From: Blastocladiella emersonii ATCC 22665
Taxonomy: Eukaryota; Fungi; Blastocladiomycota
Direction: 5' to 3'
Length of the DNA: 64,000 bases
NCBI GenBank assembly: GCA_025594325.1
Contig: JANHCV010000003.1
Span: 434,001 to 498,000, forward strand
A program made the position numbers and the translations under genes. This document shows positions 10,801-57,213 of this stretch, piece after piece; the stretch's first letter is position 1, and each line of letters opens with the position of its first letter. Below the pieces are notes generated by a model that searched no databases, was not told the DNA's origin, and worked only from the letters and a program-made list of their open reading frames with translations.

Positions 10801-10860
10801 AGGCGTGGGTTTGGTTCCTCGCCGCCATCGTGATGCCCGTGTCTTCGCGCTGAGCCGTGG
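4900..10860. pseudogene. Several heavily degraded gene relics on both strands
   Basis: Short codon-biased stretches broken by stops and frameshifts: AQQQLKLGSHYTVPG...VEEELEELHDVLEIED (minus, ~6470-6700), WDPFFVAILFSIVGVVHRKIEL (plus, ~10140) and an ATG plus intron at 8622. No family recognised. Confidence 0.3.
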
Positions 10861-10863
10861 GTG

Positions 10864-11188
10864 AGTTCAAGTACACACGCGCACGCTGGCCCAACCGCGA
10901 GAGACGCGTCGGGCAATCACGCGAGTGGCACGCGCTGGCGGCGCCACACTTCCAGTCACCGCCGGCGGACTGCCTCGCCGCGGGGTCGCACGCTCACCTC
11001 AAGCGAGCGTCTCCGCTCCCTCTGGTTTTGTTCGAGATCGCTGCTACTATTAGCCGTCGTTATACACCCTCTCCTCCCTTCTGCGTCTACCTCCTTCGCC
11101 GTGTCCATCACCGTCTCCATCATCTCCTCAGCCTTCCGTGCATCGTGCTCAACCTTCCTCTCGCACCCTGCACCTGTACGCTTCAACT
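10864..11188 (+). repeat. 5' LTR (AGTTCAAG...TTCAACT)
   Basis: Ungapped match to 18064-18388 with 8 mismatches in 325 bp. Confidence 0.95.
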
Positions 11189-11200
11189 GGTTATGAGCCC
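11189..11200 (+). promoter_or_regulatory. Primer-binding site GGTTATGAGCCC (anticodon arm of initiator tRNA-Met)
   Basis: It directly follows the 5' LTR and is the reverse complement of GGGCUCAUAACC, the same class of internal PBS used by Drosophila copia and Ty5. Confidence 0.8.
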
Positions 11201-11497
11201 TGCTCGCCCTTGAAGCTTGATGTACGTACGGCCTCCGCTTCCTCCAAGTCGCTTCCACACCTCCCTGCCGCCGCGCGGTCACTGCACCTGCGCCCGCTGT
11301 ACTGGCGTGGGCCGCGGACCGTGCGAGCGGCCGAGCACCAGGGCGGGAATCGCTGCCTGCCCCGTGGCGGGTCCCAGTGCCTGCAGCGGTTGACACGGGG
11401 CCGCCGGCGTGGTTAGCCCGGCCGCCCACCTCCGTTCTCCCTCACGTCGACGTGTGCGCCACCTCGCGCTCACGGCAGCAGATCGTGCCGTTGGGTA

Positions 11498-11915
11498 TCC
11501 CGCGTATCAGTGCACCACCGCCTTGCGCGTTAGCCAAGTGCGCACACTGTGTTAGCAGATACCCTTCTGCACGATAGTCGCAATGACGGAAACCGCGTTC
11601 GCCACCCGTGTTCGCGGCGGTTCGCGCCGCCGGGCGTCCCGCGAATCGGTGCACCACCGCCTTGCGCGTTAGCCAAGTGCGCACACCGTATTAGCAGACC
11701 CCGCGCCGCGCGTTCCAGCAACCTCCCCGCCGCCGGGCGTCCCGCGTATCAGTGCACCACCGCCTTGCGCGTTAGCCAAGTGCGCACACCGTGTAAGCAG
11801 ACCCCGCGCCACGAGCTCCTGCAACTTCCCCGCCGCCAGGCGTCCCGCGTATCGGTGCACCACCGCCTTGCGCGTTAGCCAAGTGCGCACACCGTGTAAG
11901 CAGACCCCGCGCGGC
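11498..11915 (+). repeat. Tandem repeat of ~103 bp x4 with an invariant 38-bp core
   Basis: GTGCACCACCGCCTTGCGCGTTAGCCAAGTGCGCACAC occurs at 11510, 11649, 11752 and 11855 (spacing 139, 103, 103). Confidence 0.9.
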
Positions 11916-12879
11916 GCGTTGCATCATCCCCTGCCTGTGAGCCTCGGACGCGTTCCCCGATGTGATGTGTGTGTGGTTGCGACCAGGAGAAGCGGGCGTC
12001 GTGCGTGCGCGAGTGTGGGTCGCCCTTTGCAGTCACCTCCAATGCACTTCGATCTGCTCACTCCTCCTCTCGCCCCGCCGTCCGTCGTTTAGAAGTACTC
12101 GCAACACTTCGCTCCCCTTGCTCCGTATCTGGCTCGGTTCCCTTGGAACCTCTCTGGCATCTCCACCATGTATGGCTCCCCAACAACGTAGGGCGACCAT
12201 GCATCGCCCCTCACACTCACGCACGCTTACCTGCACAGACCAACTATGCACACCACACAATCTTGCACTATGATGGGCGCACCTGCACCGCCAGCACCTC
12301 TCCGCGCCACCATGCTCGCCTCGCGTCGCTCTGCGAACAGTCGCGCCCTCCCCGCGCCGTCTTGCGGGCGACGGCGTTGCAATCGCTGCGCGGCTGGCTG
12401 CCTTGCCCCGCTCGCCTCGCATCGTCGCGCGAGTACCAGCACTGCGTGCCTGCTCGCCATCGCGCTCCTCGCGGACTCTTGGCCATCTCCCGCAGTGCAC
12501 GACGTGGCATCACGCTCATCACGCACAATCTGAGCCCCTACGCTCCGCCTACCTGCTGGTTCGGCGCGGGGTCCCACATCCCGCTCGCCATCCGATCTCC
12601 CGCGACACGAACCACTCCACACGCTCTCCGCCATCCTACGTTCCGCACGTCCCCAACTCGCTCCTCGCCCTTGTGGAAACCGCGCGTCCCGTGTGACGTC
12701 GGTCCTCGCACGGTCCACGGCGCCCTACCGCCCTGTTGGCCGTGTACACTCGCGCTACCCACGCTCGCGTAATCCACGGTGCACCACGCTGTTCGGCCCC
12801 GGCCGAGCCGCAGTTCCCCGATTGCACTCGCGCAAGCTGTGCATTCCGCGCGGCATCCCGCTCGCTGACTCGCTTGCGC

Positions 12880-14150
12880 GATCCACGTCTTCCCGCGCGA
12901 CACCTGCTCTCGCGCGAGTTGCGCACACCGCTCGTCGCCCACTAGCGCGACGCGCGCGTCCCGCTCGTCGCCCGCTCGTACGACCCGCGACATCCCGCTC
13001 GGCGCCGGCACTTGTGCGAGCTGCGGAACCCGCATGACGCCCGCACTCGCGCCATCCGCACCACCCGCTCGTCGCCCGTTCGCGCGATCCGCGCGTCCTG
13101 CACGTCGCGCAGTCCGCGCGTCTCGCTCGTCGCCCACTCGTGCGATCCACGCGTTCCGCTCGTCGCCCGTTCGCGCGATCCGCGCGTCCCGCTCGTCACC
13201 TGCACCCGCGCGAGCTGTGCGTCCTTCTCGCCGCCTGCGCTCGCGCGATCCGCGACGTCCCGCATGGCACTCGCTACTAGATCGAGCTGTGCATCCCGCT
13301 AGCCGCTGGCGCTCGCGTGATCCGCGACGTCCTTCGCGGCCCCTGCGCCCGCGCGATCCGCGTTTTTCCCGCTCGCCACCTGCACTTGCGCGGCCAACGG
13401 TACCCTGTCCTCCGCCTGCGCCCACGCGATCCGCGACATCTTGCACGGTGCCTGCGCTCGCGCGATCCGCAACACCACGCTCGTCGTCTACGCTCGCGCG
13501 ATCCGCGGCATCATGATCGCTGTCGGCGCTCGTGCGACCAGTGATACCCCGTTCGCCGCCTGCGCTCGCGCGATCCGCGGCATCCCGTCGCGCACCGGCG
13601 CTCGCGCGATTTGCAGCATCCCGCTCGTCGCACGCGTCGCGCATCCCCCTTGCCGCCCGCGCTCACGCGATCCCGTGACGCTCCACCACGGCGCACACGC
13701 CCGCGCGATCCACGGCATTGCGCTCAGCGCCCACACTCGCGCAATCCGCGGCACCCGCTTGACGCACGCGCTCGCGCGATCCGCAGCACCTTCTTGCCGC
13801 CTGCGCTCACGCTGGCCGCGCACCCCGCTCGCTGTGCGCCCTCACGCGAGGCGCGCGCTGACAGCACCCCGTTTGCCATCCGCATTTGCGCTACCCACGG
13901 CACCCCGCTCGCCCGCTTGACTCGCACAATTTGTGGTATCCCGCTCGCACGCTGGACCCGCACGACCCGCAGCATCCCGCTCGTCTTCCAACGTCGCGCA
14001 AGTCGCACATCCTTCTCACCGAAGGCACCTGCGCAATCTGCGGCACCCCGCTCGCTTCGCGCACCCTCCTCGCCGTACGCGCCTGCGCGATTCGCGCATC
14101 CCGCTCACCGCATGCGCTTGCGCGTGCTGCATCATCCCGCCTGCAGTTCA
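12880..14150 (+). repeat. Degenerate GC-rich minisatellite (~36-42 bp, core CGCGCGATCCGC)
   Basis: About 8 near-perfect cores and many variants, producing RAIRG and ADRASAG peptide repeats in the ORF track. Confidence 0.8.
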
Positions 14151-14322
14151 CACTCTGTTGAACTGCTGCGCCTTACCTGCTGGGTGCTGCCTTGTGGTTA
14201 CCTCCTGTCACACTCCCTATCCGCTGCTACGCGGCCTGCTGCAGCCCTTCGCGCGCTGCGCGCCGTGCTCGCACCGCTGTGCGCTCCCTACATGCCCCTA
14301 CGCTTGCTCCTGCCTCATGGTG

Positions 14323-14680
14323 GTTGGGGGAGCGGCCGCGTCTGTCCCGCCTCTTGCTGTTGGGGGAGTGGCCGCGCCTGTCTTGCTGCTTGCCATTGGG
14401 GGAGTTGCCGCGCCCGTCCCGCTGCCCGCCATCAACGAGCCTGAGCTGGCCACCATCGCCGACGGGTTCTACGCCAACGCCGCGCTCCTGCCCGACCGGC
14501 TCAACGCCATCAAGGCGGCCGCGGCAACGACGCGCTGCTCGCTGTCGGGGGAGCCGCTGCGCCCGATCCGCCGCTCACCGTCGGGGGAGCCGCTGCGCCC
14601 GACCCGCCGCTCGCCGTCGGGGGAGCCGCTGCGCCTGACCCGCCGCTCGCCGTCGGGGGAGCCGCCGCACCTCGCCCGTC
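14323..14680 (+). repeat. Two related 36-bp arrays (VGGAAAxxPPLA)
   Basis: Units at 14323, 14359 and 14395, then 14544, 14580, 14616 and 14652. The two arrays lie in different frames, with a frameshift near 14522. Confidence 0.85.
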
Positions 14681-17600
14681 CGACATCTCCATTGAGATGG
14701 GGGGAGGAACCTTGGACTCGGCCCCGGCCCGCGCATCTGGCCCCGCCGCCGGCGATGCACCACCACTACCGCCGTTGCCATCCACCACCGGCACCTCTTC
14801 CTCAACACGGTCTCGATTTCCTTGTTCATTCTCAAAATCTGAAGCCAAGACTGCCACCTCGACGGCCATCCTGCACCTTCGGTTCGGCCACGCCGGCTGC
14901 AACGCGCTGCGCAAGCTCTTCGACCCGATCTACCACCTCTTCTCCGAGCACAAGTTGCACCTGGCCGACAAGACGCTTGACAACGACTGCTTCATCTGCA
15001 AATCGCATAAGGAGGTGTTCCAGTCGCTCCCATCCACGGGCAACACCACCAACGCCCCGCTTGAGCTGCTCCAGGTGGACTTAAATGTCATCAATTATGC
15101 GCCGTTGCACATCCACGGCTACCGCTACGTCATGGCCGTGCACAACGACTTCTCCTGGCTCGCGTGGCTCGTGCTGCTCAAGAAGAAGAGTGAGGCCGCC
15201 CAGAAGCTCCGCCACCTCCTCAACCGCATCGAGCGCAACCTGTCGCACAAGGTTGTCCACCTGCGCTGCAACGGCGAGGGCTCGTTCCGCAGCAACTCGT
15301 TTGTGTCGTGGTGCAGCACCATGGGCATCCAGCTCGAGCCAACGGTCCCCGGCCACCACGGCGGCAACGGCTCGGTCGAGCGCCTGTTCTGCACGCTCAA
15401 CGAGCGCGTCTGCGCCTACCTCCAGCACGTCGACCGCTGCCTCGTGTTCAACCAGACCCCGCGCGCCGGCCTCAACTGGAAGACGCCATACGAGGTCCTC
15501 TATGGCCGCGTGCCTAACCTCGCCAACATCCGCGCGTGGGGCGTCACCGCGCTCGCGCCGCCGCGGCACGGCACGCACGTGCGCAAGCTTGACCCATCAG
15601 CGCGCCTGTATATCTTCCTCGGCCATGGCGACAACGAGGCCAAGACGCACGTCATGCTCAACCTGCAGACCAAGCGCATCGTGCGCGTCCGGCTCGCCGT
15701 GTTCGACAAACAAGCGCTCGTCAAGCGCGCCATGTTGAGCGTGGAAGCCTTCCACCGCCTCTTCAAGGACTACGAGACGCAGTACACCAAGGATGACGGG
15801 GCTCGTCAACTCCCCGGCAACGACAAGTACTCGCCCTCGCAGGACGGCACCCAGTACGACGAGGGGTTCGACTCCGAGGAGGAGGTCAACCAGTTCCTGT
15901 ACAAGATCAACGGGCCAACCGCGTCCGGCGGTGCACGCGTACACGCGCCCGGTCCCGCGCCGCGCGCCGAGTTGCCGATCCCCAGTCCCGCACCGCGCGC
16001 TGAGTCGCTGATCCCCAAGATCGCACCGCGCGCTGAGTCGCCGATCCCTGAGATCGCGCCACGCGTCAATCCGCCGGCACCCGAGATCGCGCCGCACGGC
16101 GACCCGCCAATCCCCGCACGTTTCGGCGACCTCGTATACAACAAGAAGACAGACTCGTACCGGTACCCGCCCACGTCAACCAGAACGCGCATCGGCCGCA
16201 CCGTCGCTCGGCCCATGCTCAACCTTGCGCTGCCCGACCCGTTCGCGGCTGTGTCGCTGTTCCACGCCCCACGTAAACAGGCCACCAACATTGTCGCCAC
16301 TGCGACGGCCCATCCGTCGCAGCTCACCACCGGCGTGTCCCAGTCGGTCATGTTCACCATGATCGACGTGCCACGCAACTACCGCGACGCGTGCAAGTCC
16401 AAGAACTTCACCAAGTGGTTTGCCACGCAGAACACGGAGCTCACGGCGCTGATCAACAACGGCACCTGGATCGTGATCAAGAAGGCCAACGTCCCCGCCG
16501 GCGAACGCATCATCGGCTTGCAGTGGGTCTACGCATACAAGGCCGCCAAGGACATCTTCAAGGCGCGCCTCATTGCCCGAGGAGACCAGCAGCGCGTCGG
16601 CCTCGACGTCGATAACTGCTACTTGCCCACGGTCTCGTACGCGTCGATCCGCACCTTCTTCGCCGTCGCCGCGTCGCGCAGGTGGTGTATCCACTCCATG
16701 GACGTCTCAAACGCGTACGTCCACGCTGACTTGCCCAAGCCCATGTACATGTACCTGCCACCGGGCATCGGCGCCGCGCCCAACGACGTGTTCCTCCTCA
16801 AGAAGTCGATCTACGGTCTCAAGAACGCCGGCCGCAAGTGGTACTTGTTACTCTTGTCCAAGGTTGAGAAGCTCAGGTTCAAGCGCACGACGGCCAACCC
16901 ATGCGTGTTCTCGCGCAAGCTCGACGGCTCCGTGACCAACCTCGTGTGCTACGTCGACAACCTCCTCATCGGCGGCGACAACAAGCTGCAGGTTGAGCGC
17001 GTCAAGTCCGACCTTGCCAAGGTCTTCACCATCAAGGACCTTGGTCCCGCCGACTCGTTTTTGAACATGGAGGTGGTCCAACACAACGACTACATCTGGA
17101 TTGGCCAGTTGCAGTACATCAAGGACCTTGTCAAGCAGTGGGGCCTTGAACCGCCCAACACCCGGGTCCCCATCTCGCGGCTGCCCAAGTCGGGCCTCAC
17201 CAACTCCATGATCGCCTTGACCAACTACAACGGCAAGGTCCCGAACGCTGGCGACAACAGTGACACAGAGTACGACGAGTCGCAGGCCGACGCGTCCCGC
17301 ACGACCAGCGCCCTCGACGCAGATCGGACCCGCGAGTACCAGTCGGTCCTCGGCGCCCTGCTCCACCTCACCACCGTGTTGCGGCCTGACATTGCGTTTG
17401 CAGTCGGTGTTGCGGCTCGCCGCGCATCGTGCCCGACGTTTGACGACTGCAAGCTGCTCGCCCAAATCTCGCGCTATGTGACCAGCACGCCCGATCTGGG
17501 GCTCAAGTACACACGCGGCGCCTTGATTGCCAACTCGCTCCAGTGCTTCGCCGACGCCGATTACGCCGGCGACAAGGCGACGTGCCGCTCGACCTCAGGC

Positions 17601-18035
17601 GTCATGATCCTGATTGCGGGCGCCCCCGTCGCGTGGATCTCCAAGCGCCAGGCATGGGTGGCGCTGTCAACGGTCGAGTTGGAGCTCAACGCCGCCACCG
17701 AGGCAACGCCCGAGATCATCTGGATCAAGGACCTGCTCGAGCAGATGACGCACACCACGCTCGGCACAATCGTCCTGCAGGAGGACAACGCGCCGCTCAT
17801 TGCCACCACCAACAACACCGTTGCCGTGTACCGCTCGGTCAAGCACGTCACGGTCCGCATCGCCTTCATCCGCTAGAAGGTCAACACGGGCGTGATCTCG
17901 ATCAACAAGGTCGCGTCCGAGAACAACCTCGCCGACTTCTTCACCAAGCCCATTGTGAGCACGTTCAACTGGGCCGTGTCCCGACTCGGCCTTCACCTGC
18001 ACCCGCTCGCCAAGCGCAACATCACCAAGGCGTAG
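14523..18035 (+). pseudogene. Copia pol: GAG-pre-integrase, integrase, RT, RNase H
   Basis: Motifs HLRFGH...CFIC, LLQVDL, GNGSVER, KARLIARG, LKKSIYGLK, YVDNLL, ADADYAGD...RSTSG and ADFFTKP. There is an in-frame TAG at 17874-17876, and catalytic Asp residues read Asn. Confidence 0.92.
15957..16116 (+). repeat. 33-bp in-frame repeat x5 (APRAESPIPEI) in the IN-RT linker
   Basis: Units at 15957, 15990, 16023, 16056 and 16089. Confidence 0.85.
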
Positions 18036-18056
18036 GCTCCCCCTCGACCAGCAGTC

Positions 18057-18063
18057 GGGGGAG
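18057..18063 (+). promoter_or_regulatory. Polypurine tract GGGGGAG
   Basis: It immediately precedes the 3' LTR. Confidence 0.8.
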
Positions 18064-18388
18064 AGTTCAAGTACACACGCGCACGCTGGCCCAACCGCGA
18101 GAGACACGTCGGGCAATCACGCGAGTGGCACGCGCTGGCGGCGCCACACTTCCAGTCACCGCTGGCGGACTGCCTCGCTGCGGGGTCGCACGCTCATCTC
18201 AAGCGAGCGTCTCCGCTCCCTCTGGTTTTGTTCGAGATCGCTGCTACTATTAGCCGTCGTTATACACCCTCTCCTCCCTTCTGTGTCTACCTCCTTCGCT
18301 GTGTCCATCACCGTCTCCATCATCTCCTCAGCCTTCCGTGCATCGTGCTCAACCTTCCTCTCACACCCTGCACCTGTACGCCTCAACT
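18064..18388 (+). repeat. 3' LTR (AGTTCAAG...CTCAACT)
   Basis: 317/325 identical to the 5' LTR and followed by TSD GGGTG. Confidence 0.95.
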
Positions 18389-18872
18389 GGGTGCGCGTCT
18401 GGCTTGGACTGAAAGTTCTTGCCAATCGCCGGTCTCACGCAGACGCAAGGCAACATGTCCTTCTCGGCCAGTCTCTTCATGGCCTGGTTTGCCATTGCCG
18501 AGCTCCTTGCCACCTTCACCCTTAGGGGCTCGCCCACGATCAACCCAACGGTGAGAGCGAATGCCAGTCCGTGTTCCAGCTCCTCCATTGCATGGGCTCT
18601 GACGCGGCCAAGAACTGCGAGGCAATGATCAAGGTCACAGTCGTCCAGTGTCATTGCACTCTTGCTCATCCTCCTCAATCTCGTTGGCAGTTTCCCATTC
18701 TTTGGGCGCGAGCCCGTATATTGAGACAGTTACTTTACAATTGAGTGAAATATAGCTACAAAGGTACTTCTGCGATACGTCATTACTCCATGGAATGTGC
18801 CACGGTCGCAAGGAGAGGCCACAATCGTCATGGTCGCGGGTCATCTCGAGCAGCGGCAGCAGCAAGGCCAGA

Positions 18873-54360: not shown

Positions 54361-57213
54361 TCAATCCAGGAGGAACGCGTCGCGCGCGGCCTCGAGCACC
54401 TCGTCCGCGAGGTCGCCGGCGCCGCCCTCGGTGAGCGAGTGCGCGGCGGCGGTCGCGGCCTTGAACGTCGTCGAGCGCCAGACGCCGACGACGGCGAGCC
54501 ACGCGCGGACCGCGCCGGCCGCCACGTCGCGGTCGCCGAGCACCAGGGACACGCGCGCCGCGGCCACGGCGTGCGCGAGGGACGCGGTGCCGTGCACGGC
54601 GAGGAACGCGCTGTTGCGGTCGGCCAAGGGCGTGAGCTCGGTGGCGCCCTCGTTTTGAAGCTGAGCCAGGCCCTCGACGACCACGGACCGGACCGACTCG
54701 TCGATCGCCTGCGCCTCCTCGGCGTCGGCCTCGGTGACGAGCGCCTGGAGCGTGAGCGTGCGCTGGTGCGTGTCCGGGTGCTCGGGCGCGATGGCGTGCA
54801 TCTGCTGGACCGCGCGGAGGGCGAACAGCCATTGCTGCTGCTGCGCGTACACGTCGAAGGCGAGCTTGTGGGTCTCGAGGCGGTGGCCGGCGTACGTCTC
54901 GAGGAGCGTGACGAGCTTGGCGGCGGCCTCGAGGGGCTCAGTCGCGAGGAACTTGGCGCCGAGCGGGTCGAGGTCCGCGGGCGGCGGCGGCGGCTTGTTG
55001 TCGTCGGCCGCGTCCTTGGCATGCTTCTTCTTCTCCTTGGCCGCGAGCTTCTTGGCCGCGGTCGCCGCCGCCTCGGCCTCGGCGACCTGCGCAGCAAACT
55101 CGGGCGTGGCCTTGACGCGGTGGACGCGCAGGTACTCCTCGATGGCGGCGCGCGCGGCGCGGGTAAAGTACGGGTGGCTGCGCAGCGTGTCCTCCCACCG
55201 CAGCGTGGCGACGTACGCGCGCAGCGTCATCTTGCGCAGGCAGTACGAGTGGAAGTCGAACTGGTCGTCGTCAAACTCGCGGAAGTGGCCGACGAGCTGC
55301 TCAAACTTCTTGAGCGCGGGTCCGTGCCGGCCGGCCGCGGCGTGCGCGTGCCCGCACTCGAACGCGAACCACTGGCACTGCATGTCGACGAGGTCGGCGA
55401 TCGGGTTGGCGATATCGGGCCGCGCGAACAGGCGGATCGTCGCCTCGGCCTGCTCGATCTCGCCGTTGCGGATCAGGTACTTGGTGCACTTGGTGTTGAG
55501 GTACCGGTCCTTGAGGTCCACCTTGCGCGCCGCCTCGAGCGTGTCGCGCGCGCGCTGCGCGTCGCCCGCGTGCTTGTAGATGCGGCCCTCGAGCATCAGC
55601 AGCTCGGGCACCGGTCGCTCCGCGTCCTGCTCGGCCACCGCCTGCCGCACGTGCTCCAGCGCAACCGCGCGCTCGCCCTGCCGGTCGTAGTACTGCGCGA
55701 GGAAGTAGTGCAGCCACAGCTTGCCCTCGGCGCCCGTGGCCGCGTCGGCGTCGGCGTTGGCGGTCTCGAGCAGCCGCTGGGCCACGCTCTCGAGGACCGG
55801 CGCCTTGTCGGCGTCGTCGTACAGCGGGCGCAGGTTGGCGAACAGCGAGGGGACGCCCTTGGCGACGTTGGCGACAATGTACTGCTCGAGGCGGGCGGCG
55901 AACAGGTCCGATTTGGCGTCGGCCTCGATGAGGAGCATGAGCTGGATGAGGCCAGACTTGGGGTACTCCTCGGCAAGCCCCTCGAGTACGTCGACGGGGG
56001 CCTCCTGGGCGGCGCGGATGAACCCGTCGACGTAGTTGCGCGAGTCCGGGTTGGTCTTGATGAGCTTGGCGTACGCCTCCATGGCGCGCTCGTGGTGGCC
56101 GAGGGTGACGAGCAGGTGCGCGCGGCGCTCCTGCACGGCGCGCACGTCGCACACGACGCGCTCCATGGCGTCGAGCTCGTCGAGCGCGCGGTCCAGCTCG
56201 CCCGCTTCCTCGAGGATCTCGTTCTTGTACATGAGCATCTCGGACCAGTCCCAGTCGCGCGGCGGCGGCGCCGGGTTGTAGGTGCCCTGCCACGCCTCGA
56301 TCATGGCCAGCGCCGTGTCGTAATCCTTGAGCAGGTGGTTCGCGACCACCAGGCCCACCAGGTGTGGCCGCTGGTGCACGCCGCGGAACATGCGCGCGAG
56401 CAGCTCGCGCGTCGCCTACGCGTTCGGGGACTGGGGGTCAGTCGTGCGCGCGAGGGACGCGGTGCGGCGACGAGAACGCGCGCGCGTACCTTGTACCCGG
56501 CGTAGTCGCGGGTCTGGATCTGCAGCAGCGCGAGGTCGCGGAGGATCTGGACATTGTGCTACACGCCGCGACCAATCCCACGAGTCAGTCCACGGTATTC
56601 GCACGCCAACCGCGCAAACACGTACCGAGTCAAGCTTGAGCGCCTCGTGGTAGCACTTGATCGCCTCCGCGTACTCCTTGCCGCCGCGATGGATCAGGCC
56701 GTAGACGTGCCAGATGATGTGCGATCCGGGGTCGAGCTCGACGGCCTTGCGCACCTCCTTGAACCCTTCCTCGCGCTGGTCGAGCTGCGACATGAACAGG
56801 CCCTTCATGGCGTGCGACTCGCCGTGGTCGGGCACCTTCTTGAGGATGCCCTCGACCGCCTTGAGCCCCTTCTTGTACTGCTTGGTCTCGTACATCTTGA
56901 GCACCGTCTTGAAGATGGTCGCCTCCTTGGCCGGCAGCGGCTTGCGCTGCTGTGCGGCCGCCGACGCGGACTTGGCGCCCCCGGCCGCGGCCGCTGCGCG
57001 CGCCGCCTTGAGCGCCGCTGCCGTCTTGGCGAGCGACGCGGACGCGGCCGACGTCGGCTTGGCTGCGCCGTTGCTACTGCTGGCAGCGGAGGCAGACGCG
57101 GACGTCGCGGCGGCAGCGGCAGCCGTCTTGGCCTCGGCTTTGGCCTTGGCGGCCTCGACGAGGGCCTTGGGCGGCGCCGTCTTGGGCTTGCCCATGTTAC
57201 GCTTCGGAGGCAT
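54361..57213 (-). CDS. NAA15: NatA N-terminal acetyltransferase auxiliary subunit (TPR), 2 introns
   Basis: LPAKEATIFKTVLKMYETKQYKKGLK, DHGESHAMKG, SHIIWHVYGL, DLKDRYLNTKCTKY, DDQFDFHSYCLRKMTLRAY. Confidence 0.96.

Follow-up and report, generated by a model that had tools for sequence, protein, structure and literature searches.

A 64,000-nucleotide stretch of the genome of the fungus Blastocladiella emersonii ATCC 22665 (GenBank assembly GCA_025594325.1, contig JANHCV010000003.1, positions 434,001 to 498,000; hereafter the window) contains, at positions 10864-18388, a 7,525-bp long terminal repeat (LTR) element of Ty1/copia order whose LTRs begin with AG and end with CT. A preliminary description of this DNA had fixed these ends by four landmarks that lie directly against AGTT or CAACT, namely the two copies of the target-site duplication, the polypurine tract (PPT) and the primer-binding site (PBS), and all four were found exactly where it had placed them (Table 1). 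Direct reading of the junctions gave GGGTG followed by AGTTCAAG on the left and CTCAACT followed by GGGTG on the right. The two LTRs were paired by a repeat finder (10853-11152 with 18053-18352, 97% identity), and pairwise alignment revealed 8 differences over 325 positions, all of them transitions and 6 in CpG context. The terminal inverted repeat of the window copy matches in 7 of 8 bases.

The sole long frame of the element encodes, within one open reading frame (ORF), the Pfam domains rve (residues 120-220), SH3_retrovirus (269-340) and RVT_2 (590-822), in this order, and its C-terminal residues 879-1056 match copia polyproteins. As the integrase domain thus precedes the RVT_2 reverse transcriptase (RT), the architecture is that of Ty1/copia, in agreement with the initial assignment. 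The PBS is a 15-nt perfect complement to nt 25-39 of the 72-nt initiator tRNA-Met(CAT) gene of this genome, corresponding to nt 26-40 in standard numbering. The next tRNA base, a C, does not pair with the T at 11188, and the PBS consequently begins exactly at 11189. On this complementarity, the window element is predicted to be primed by a half-tRNA in a hemivirus-like manner; priming of this type is known from copia, Ty5, Osser and 1731, where synthesis starts from tRNA nt 40 (PMC1181622).

Table 1. Features of the LTR element, in window coordinates
Feature	Position	Strand	Remark
Target-site duplication, left copy, GGGTG	10859-10863		Identical to 18389-18393; abuts LTR
5' LTR, 325 bp, AGTTCAAG...CTTCAACT	10864-11188	+	97.5% identity to 3' LTR
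Primer-binding site GGTTATGAGCCCTGC	11189-11203	+	Touches 5' LTR, right after CAACT
5' internal region, stacked tandem arrays (103-nt and ~36-nt periods)	11204-14444	+	Repeats; ORFs without Pfam match
pol frame, 1,143 codons stop to stop, first ATG at 14697	14445-17876	+	Integrase, then RT, then RNase H region
Integrase catalytic core (rve)	15054-15356	+	Pfam
Asn codon AAC at second catalytic Asp	15270-15272	+	GAC (Asp) in two other family-A copies
Reverse transcriptase, Ty1/copia type, RVT_2	16464-17162	+	Pfam, E = 3.9e-50
Polypurine tract GGGGGAG	18057-18063	+	Abuts AGTT of 3' LTR at 18064
3' LTR, 325 bp, AGTT...CAACT	18064-18388	+	Pairs with 5' LTR
Target-site duplication, right copy, GGGTG	18389-18393		Directly after CAACT ending at 18388

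Termini across the related families

The LTR of the window element, which defines family A, occurs in the 32.6-Mb genome in 21 near-full-length copies, including one that is truncated, and the family-A LTRs (>20) are spread over 8 contigs. All 20 complete LTRs start with AGTT and end with AACT (one as TTTAACT, one as AAACT). Perfect 5-bp duplications flank 12 independent insertions, comprising 5 full-length elements and 7 solo LTRs (GGGTG, GGCTT, GGCGG, TATTC, GCTTT, GCGGC, TGGCC, CCGGT, TATTG, CAGAT, GTCCG and GCGCC), where the chance expectation for each is 1/1024; two solo LTRs with common flanks in inverted orientation were counted as one insertion. The flanking 5-mers vary between insertions, yet always lie directly against AGTT and AACT, and the terminal A and T are also found inside the internal PPT-LTR and LTR-PBS junctions. 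Consequently, the element ends are fixed and no shift is possible. The AG...CT termini with a clean 5-bp duplication, as initially described, thus hold in the window copy and across the 12 family-A insertions, and since the tabulation of genomic copies and solo LTRs returned no family-A member with TG...CA ends, they are not a one-off. Two other placements of the boundary were ruled out. With TG at 10862-10863 and CA at 18385-18386 the flanks fail to match, and a 6-bp duplication with GTT...AAC ends leaves mismatched flanks here and in other copies.

A six-frame search of the genome with the window pol protein returned four copia groups, A to D. Family A comprises 5 copies with 89-100% identity to the window pol. 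Family B (2 copies, ~75% identity in RT and ~50% in integrase; about 10 LTR matches in the genome) has AGTT...TATA LTRs with perfect duplications in 3 of 3 cases (ATGTT, TTGTA and GTGAC), and its LTR-PBS junction recurs identically in three further 5' LTRs. Family C (at least 4 copies, ~65% identity to the window pol; 45 LTR matches) again reads AGTT...AACT, with perfect duplications in 3 of 4 cases. The LTRs of all three families have a common start, AGTTCAAGT, and the same polypurine tract, GGGGGAG, precedes their 3' LTRs. Family D (at least 6 copies, 42% identity in RT) carries TGCTG...TAGCA LTRs with 5-bp duplications, and ends in TG...CA in 5 of 5 elements. It is 6.2 kb long, with an uninterrupted 1,857-codon frame for gag, protease (PR), integrase and RT. 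Family D resembles the window family in its half-tRNA PBS touching the LTR, its 5-bp duplication and a similar polypurine tract, but differs in its canonical ends and its complete gag-PR-integrase-RT frame.

In the RT tree, families A, B and C form one clade (support 100/99; the AG clade below), which is grouped with family D and a single uncharacterised protein from the databases (100/99); within it, A and B are sister families (93/90). Family D is accordingly the nearest relative with known ends. The right end of family B, TATA-3', forms no terminal inverted repeat, yet repeated transposition of the family left clean duplications. In the LTR alignment, the final ~24 nt of U5, common to A and C, are missing from B. 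From this alignment and the tree placement, AGTT...AACT would be the ancestral ends of the clade and the TATA end of family B derived. The earlier suggestion of a distinct lineage therefore held within this one genome, where three families form a single clade in the phylogeny, while its specificity for CT is qualified by family B.

AG...CT ends on A and C, together with the left end of B, account for >60 LTR copies. The features by which non-TGCA LTR retrotransposons are recognised, i.e. an intact LTR pair, a target duplication and non-TG/CA dinucleotides recurring across copies, were all found. Likewise, the defining characters of Ty1/copia elements (Pseudoviridae) are present, with the integrase upstream of an RVT_2 RT, direct LTRs, PBS, PPT and a 5-bp duplication; only the TG...CA termini, which are usual and not strictly defining, are replaced by AG...CT in families A and C and by AG...TA in B. 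It is hardly credible that the ends are a one-off or an artefact, be it an assembly or sequencing error, a private mutation or terminal bases that belong to the target. More than 20 family-A LTRs, spread over 8 contigs, have these ends, the internal junctions contain the terminal A and T as well, and the 6-bp duplication model is at odds with the flanks; the insertions of families A, B and C already refute such an origin, and no point in its favour turned up among the copies compared. In combination, these observations establish that the non-canonical ends are a real, family-wide trait of a Ty1/copia clade with half-tRNA primer sites in B. emersonii.

One family-C element (L030:613, G000:C18:386912) has a 5' LTR that starts with GGTT and a 3' LTR that starts with A. 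Its LTRs are otherwise 100% identical, the terminal nucleotide being the sole difference in 377 bases, a pattern suggestive of imprecise plus-strand initiation or imprecise integration.

Gene content of the copies

No gag or protease was recognised in the 5' internal region of the window element, where neither Pfam nor a comparison with the Pol_BBD protease region of family B gave a match. The gag and protease upstream of the integrase that mark an autonomous element are thus lacking in the window copy, as they are in the other family-A copies. The array region is 92-98% conserved among these copies and is therefore a family trait, and family A is non-autonomous for gag and protease functions.

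An Asn at the second catalytic Asp of the integrase is found in the window copy and one other family-A copy; two others have the full Asp-Asp-Glu, and the Asn/Asp difference is a CpG transition. Every copy has the HHCC zinc motif and the catalytic Glu. In family B, Asn occupies the position of the first catalytic Asp in both copies, which also share a change of frame between the core of the integrase and the SH3-like domain. Family C is without ~154 residues of the integrase core and retains a protease region homologous to that of B. One full-length family-A copy has LTRs of 100% identity, and another of 99.4%, indicating recent movement of the family. With LTRs of 97.5% identity, no recognisable gag or protease and Asn at a catalytic Asp, the window copy is an older member, by now defective and non-autonomous, and no working source of the enzyme. 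Taken as a whole, the clade gives the impression of partly defective elements obliged to share their proteins, and families A, B and C may complement one another.

End recognition by the integrase

Among the cis signals for integration of retroviruses and LTR retrotransposons, the terminal CA is regarded as the most conserved. In the AG clade, the plus-strand primer and the tRNA primer would between them give a blunt cDNA with the same ends as the integrated copy. Both cDNA 3' ends of families A and C would then read AACT-3'OH, with the attacking 3'-OH on CT on both strands; in family B, it would lie on CT at the left and on TA at the right. An element-encoded integrase could join these ends to a 5-bp staggered target cut with no trimming and no terminal CA needed, and specificity might come from the conserved subterminal left end, AGTTCAAGT, or from simple co-packaging in the particle. 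The cDNA of Ty1 is blunt and is integrated without trimming (PMC2939329). The terminal A of each strand might have been a ribonucleotide left from the primer, but the T at the right end of family B rules this out as a general cause.

The start of U3 and the end of U5 are separate in the RNA, and the reciprocal end change consequently needed two mutations. Moreover, the two LTR ends evolve independently, since the right end of family B has changed and its left end has been kept. Because the unrelated TATA end of family B integrates equally cleanly, we consider it fairly probable that the integrase is tolerant of the terminal dinucleotide, i.e. of low selectivity, rather than re-tuned to CT. Whether the Blastocladiella copia integrase lineage gave up the requirement for a terminal CA-3'OH, using CT-3' at both ends and TA-3' at one end, we regard as evenly balanced. 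Several points weigh against a tolerant integrase. The cDNA may be longer and trimmed before integration, the 7-of-8 terminal inverted repeat kept in A and C looks selected, and within the clade no single family was seen with a full, catalytically intact gene set. Furthermore, the Ty1 integrase itself requires TG...CA in vivo (PMC2939329). The initial proposal of an integrase that accepts CT ends thus survives in that these ends integrate cleanly across families; tolerance is likelier than re-tuning to CT, and the window copy itself is not expected to supply the enzyme.

Two other explanations have to be weighed against tolerance. An integrase that co-evolved with the LTRs, and is now specific for AGTT/AACT instead of TGTT/AACA, would be consistent with the reciprocal nature of the change, which preserves the terminal inverted repeat (AGTTCAAG versus the reverse complement AGTTGAAG), and with its fixation in A, C and the left end of B over >60 LTR copies. 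The clade integrase also departs from 138 copia integrases, taken from a search of representative proteins, and from family D. In the AG clade alone, the DNGGE motif after the second Asp is changed to D-G-E/K-G-S/A, and 12 residues (a W-x-EA-x-x-TA helix) after the catalytic Glu are deleted, whereas family D retains both. However, family B, with TATA-3' and no inverted repeat, made at least 3 clean insertions. In addition, when aligned to the integrase of prototype foamy virus (PFV), the clade-specific residues fall on parts that in retroviral integrase serve as target-DNA and dimer contacts, not as contacts to the ends. Other departures are common to the AG clade and family D (HxD..GP to Q/R..V/A-I, and the proline at the PFV P214 position to His) and cannot explain the ends, because those of D are canonical; the loop substitution at the P214 position was ruled out as an end determinant on this ground. 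A search of the PDB by sequence returned no copia intasome structure, the best match being PFV integrase (E = 4e-7). The comparison of integrase residues proposed in the preliminary description therefore did yield clade-specific changes, none of which could be tied to an end contact, and as candidates they serve as leads only. On the whole, re-tuned specificity appears rather unlikely.

It is less probable still, and in our view improbable, that families A to C live parasitically and depend for their movement on the gag, protease and integrase of some other element, such as the complete canonical family D, whose integrase would then tolerate their ends. The lack of gag and PR in family A, the missing integrase core of family C and the Asn at the first catalytic Asp in both B copies would fit dependence of this kind, as would the presence of family D with its uninterrupted 1,857-codon gag-pol frames and the same primer. 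Conversely, family A keeps long open integrase-RT frames, with intact Asp-Asp-Glu in two copies, B and C have PR and RT sequences specific to the clade, and the ends of D itself are strictly TG...CA in 5 of 5 elements. A canonical copia integrase, that of Ty1, also rejects altered ends in vivo (PMC2939329). If tolerance is indeed the cause, the AG clade and family D form a natural matched pair for mapping how integrase reads DNA ends: the change is symmetric in the clade, one member has an unrelated right end, and the canonical sister family provides the comparison.

Comparison with known elements and further observations

Hemivirus-type copia elements (Drosophila copia, Ty5, Volvox Osser and 1731) share with the window element the integrase before RT, the 5-bp duplication and a PBS against the anticodon stem-loop of initiator tRNA-Met that ends at nt 40 and abuts the LTR (PMC1181622). 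The (x)GTT...AAC(x) of the window element also matches their usual TGTTRNR...YNYAACA signal (PMC3601003), but the outermost pair is inverted at both ends, with A for T and T for A, and the window family is without recognisable gag and protease and carries 3.2 kb of tandem arrays. Plant copia elements with non-TGCA ends include the types TGCT, TGGA, TACA, TGTA, TGGT, TACT, TATA and TGTT (PMC9804982; 10.1101/137141), among them TGGA in Tos17 and TACA in Hopscotch and TARE1 (10.1101/137141; PMC9804982; PMC5659011). TGCT is the commonest non-canonical type in lotus, with about 6,200 copies (PMC9804982), and in surveys of lotus and of 50 genomes the first base was reported as always T and the last as A or T (PMC9804982; 10.1101/137141); in Rosaceae, TG..TT and AA..CA families have been described (PMC5659011). 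These plant elements resemble the present ones in the occurrence of CT-3' and TA-3' ends, in LTRs of ~300 bp and in end types that shift between close relatives. However, an initial A is found among them in the Rosaceae AACA group alone, the lists contain neither AG...CT nor AG...TA, and the Blastocladiella change is symmetric with the inverted repeat kept, in an early-diverging fungal host and with predicted half-tRNA priming. Thus, CT-3' and TA-3' ends are already known, and the A as first base is the unusual part: where plant copia shows drift of the CA with a first base reported as invariant, the fungal clade alters the first base as well.

The closest terminal resemblance lies outside the superfamily. 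As the preliminary description had stated for insect errantiviruses, the Zam clade (Ty3/gypsy, Metaviridae) has LTR ends AGTTA...TAACT or TAATT (PMC3601003), almost the same terminal tetranucleotides. Zam-clade elements differ in having RT before integrase, an env gene and an RVT_1-type RT, whereas in the window element the integrase precedes RVT_2. Only the LTR ends are alike, and with superfamily and domain order being different the resemblance is convergent. No report of copia elements with AG...CT or AG...TA ends was found in the open-access literature searched (Repbase not included), nor was any paper on LTR elements of Blastocladiella found in the open-access literature. LTR finders filtered for TGCA would, as had been anticipated, miss at least 3 families in the B. 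emersonii genome (about 20 A, 10 B and 40 C LTR matches), and similar elements in other early-diverging fungi may escape them too.

A word-indexed protein search for close relatives returned nothing above 34% identity. A HMMER scan of 1.84 billion representatives did no better, except for one 649-aa protein (P0027) at 42%, encoded on a 2-kb Logan contig without LTR context; no relative closer than family D was thus found in the protein searches. Scanning metagenomes for AACT followed by the half-tRNA primer site gave >120 matches, 28 of which had testable downstream DNA and 4 a second LTR. All four elements are old; TG...CA ends are clear in three, and the left end of the fourth is too degraded to be read. 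Their 3' LTRs end in AACA and the T is private to the 5' copy, so that it most likely reflects mutated copies picked out by the search pattern; none of these 4 testable elements demonstrates AG...CT ends outside B. emersonii. The three TG...CA elements (L060, L077 and L108), half-tRNA-primed with an AAC-T-GG 5' junction and an AACA 3' LTR end, are probably of fungal origin, and for two of them a 6-bp duplication with TGTT...CAAC ends would fit as well.

Several of the family-A copies show further rearrangements. A 6.5-kb insertion with ~31-bp terminal inverted repeats (GTTTATTCCGAGGGATTTATGGGACCTGCCG) and ORFs of 429-793 codons, i.e. a DNA transposon, is nested in the tandem arrays of the C3 copy (L044:1315-7847, G000:C3). 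Two LTRs lie 24.9 kb apart at G000:C5:1030229-1055126 and, having the duplication GGCTT in common, represent one element swollen by ~17 kb of nested material. The solo LTRs L009 and L010 (G000:C19:1321560 and C15:1475986) have the same flanks in opposite orientation and derive from a segmental duplication younger than the insertion. Another solo LTR (L019, G000:C20:481845-482149) breaks off at base 305 and lies between two direct copies of a 24-nt host sequence, and in a further one (L017, G000:C15:2323901-2324225) 23 nt of the 3' end are duplicated in tandem ahead of the usual 5-bp target duplication. Between the window copy and L042 (G000:C5:1184300-1192800), 231 transitions, 193 of them in CpG context, and 12 transversions were counted, and CpG is not depleted in the family-A copies compared (observed/expected 1.27-1.29). 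The excess of transitions resembles the outcome of methyl-CpG deamination or of a CpG mutation process directed at repeats, either of which would inflate LTR-based ages.

The initiator tRNA-Met gene is present in nine repeats of 7.37-kb period at the start of contig 1 (G000:C1:4809-63780), probably within a tandem repeat unit such as ribosomal DNA, and also twice on contig 16, beside tRNA-His and in inverted arrangement (L039-L041). Elsewhere in the window, an ORF for a NatA auxiliary subunit, 100% identical to a protein of B. emersonii ATCC 22665, lies on the minus strand at 54361-56391; its next matches are from B. britannica, Allomyces and Catenaria.

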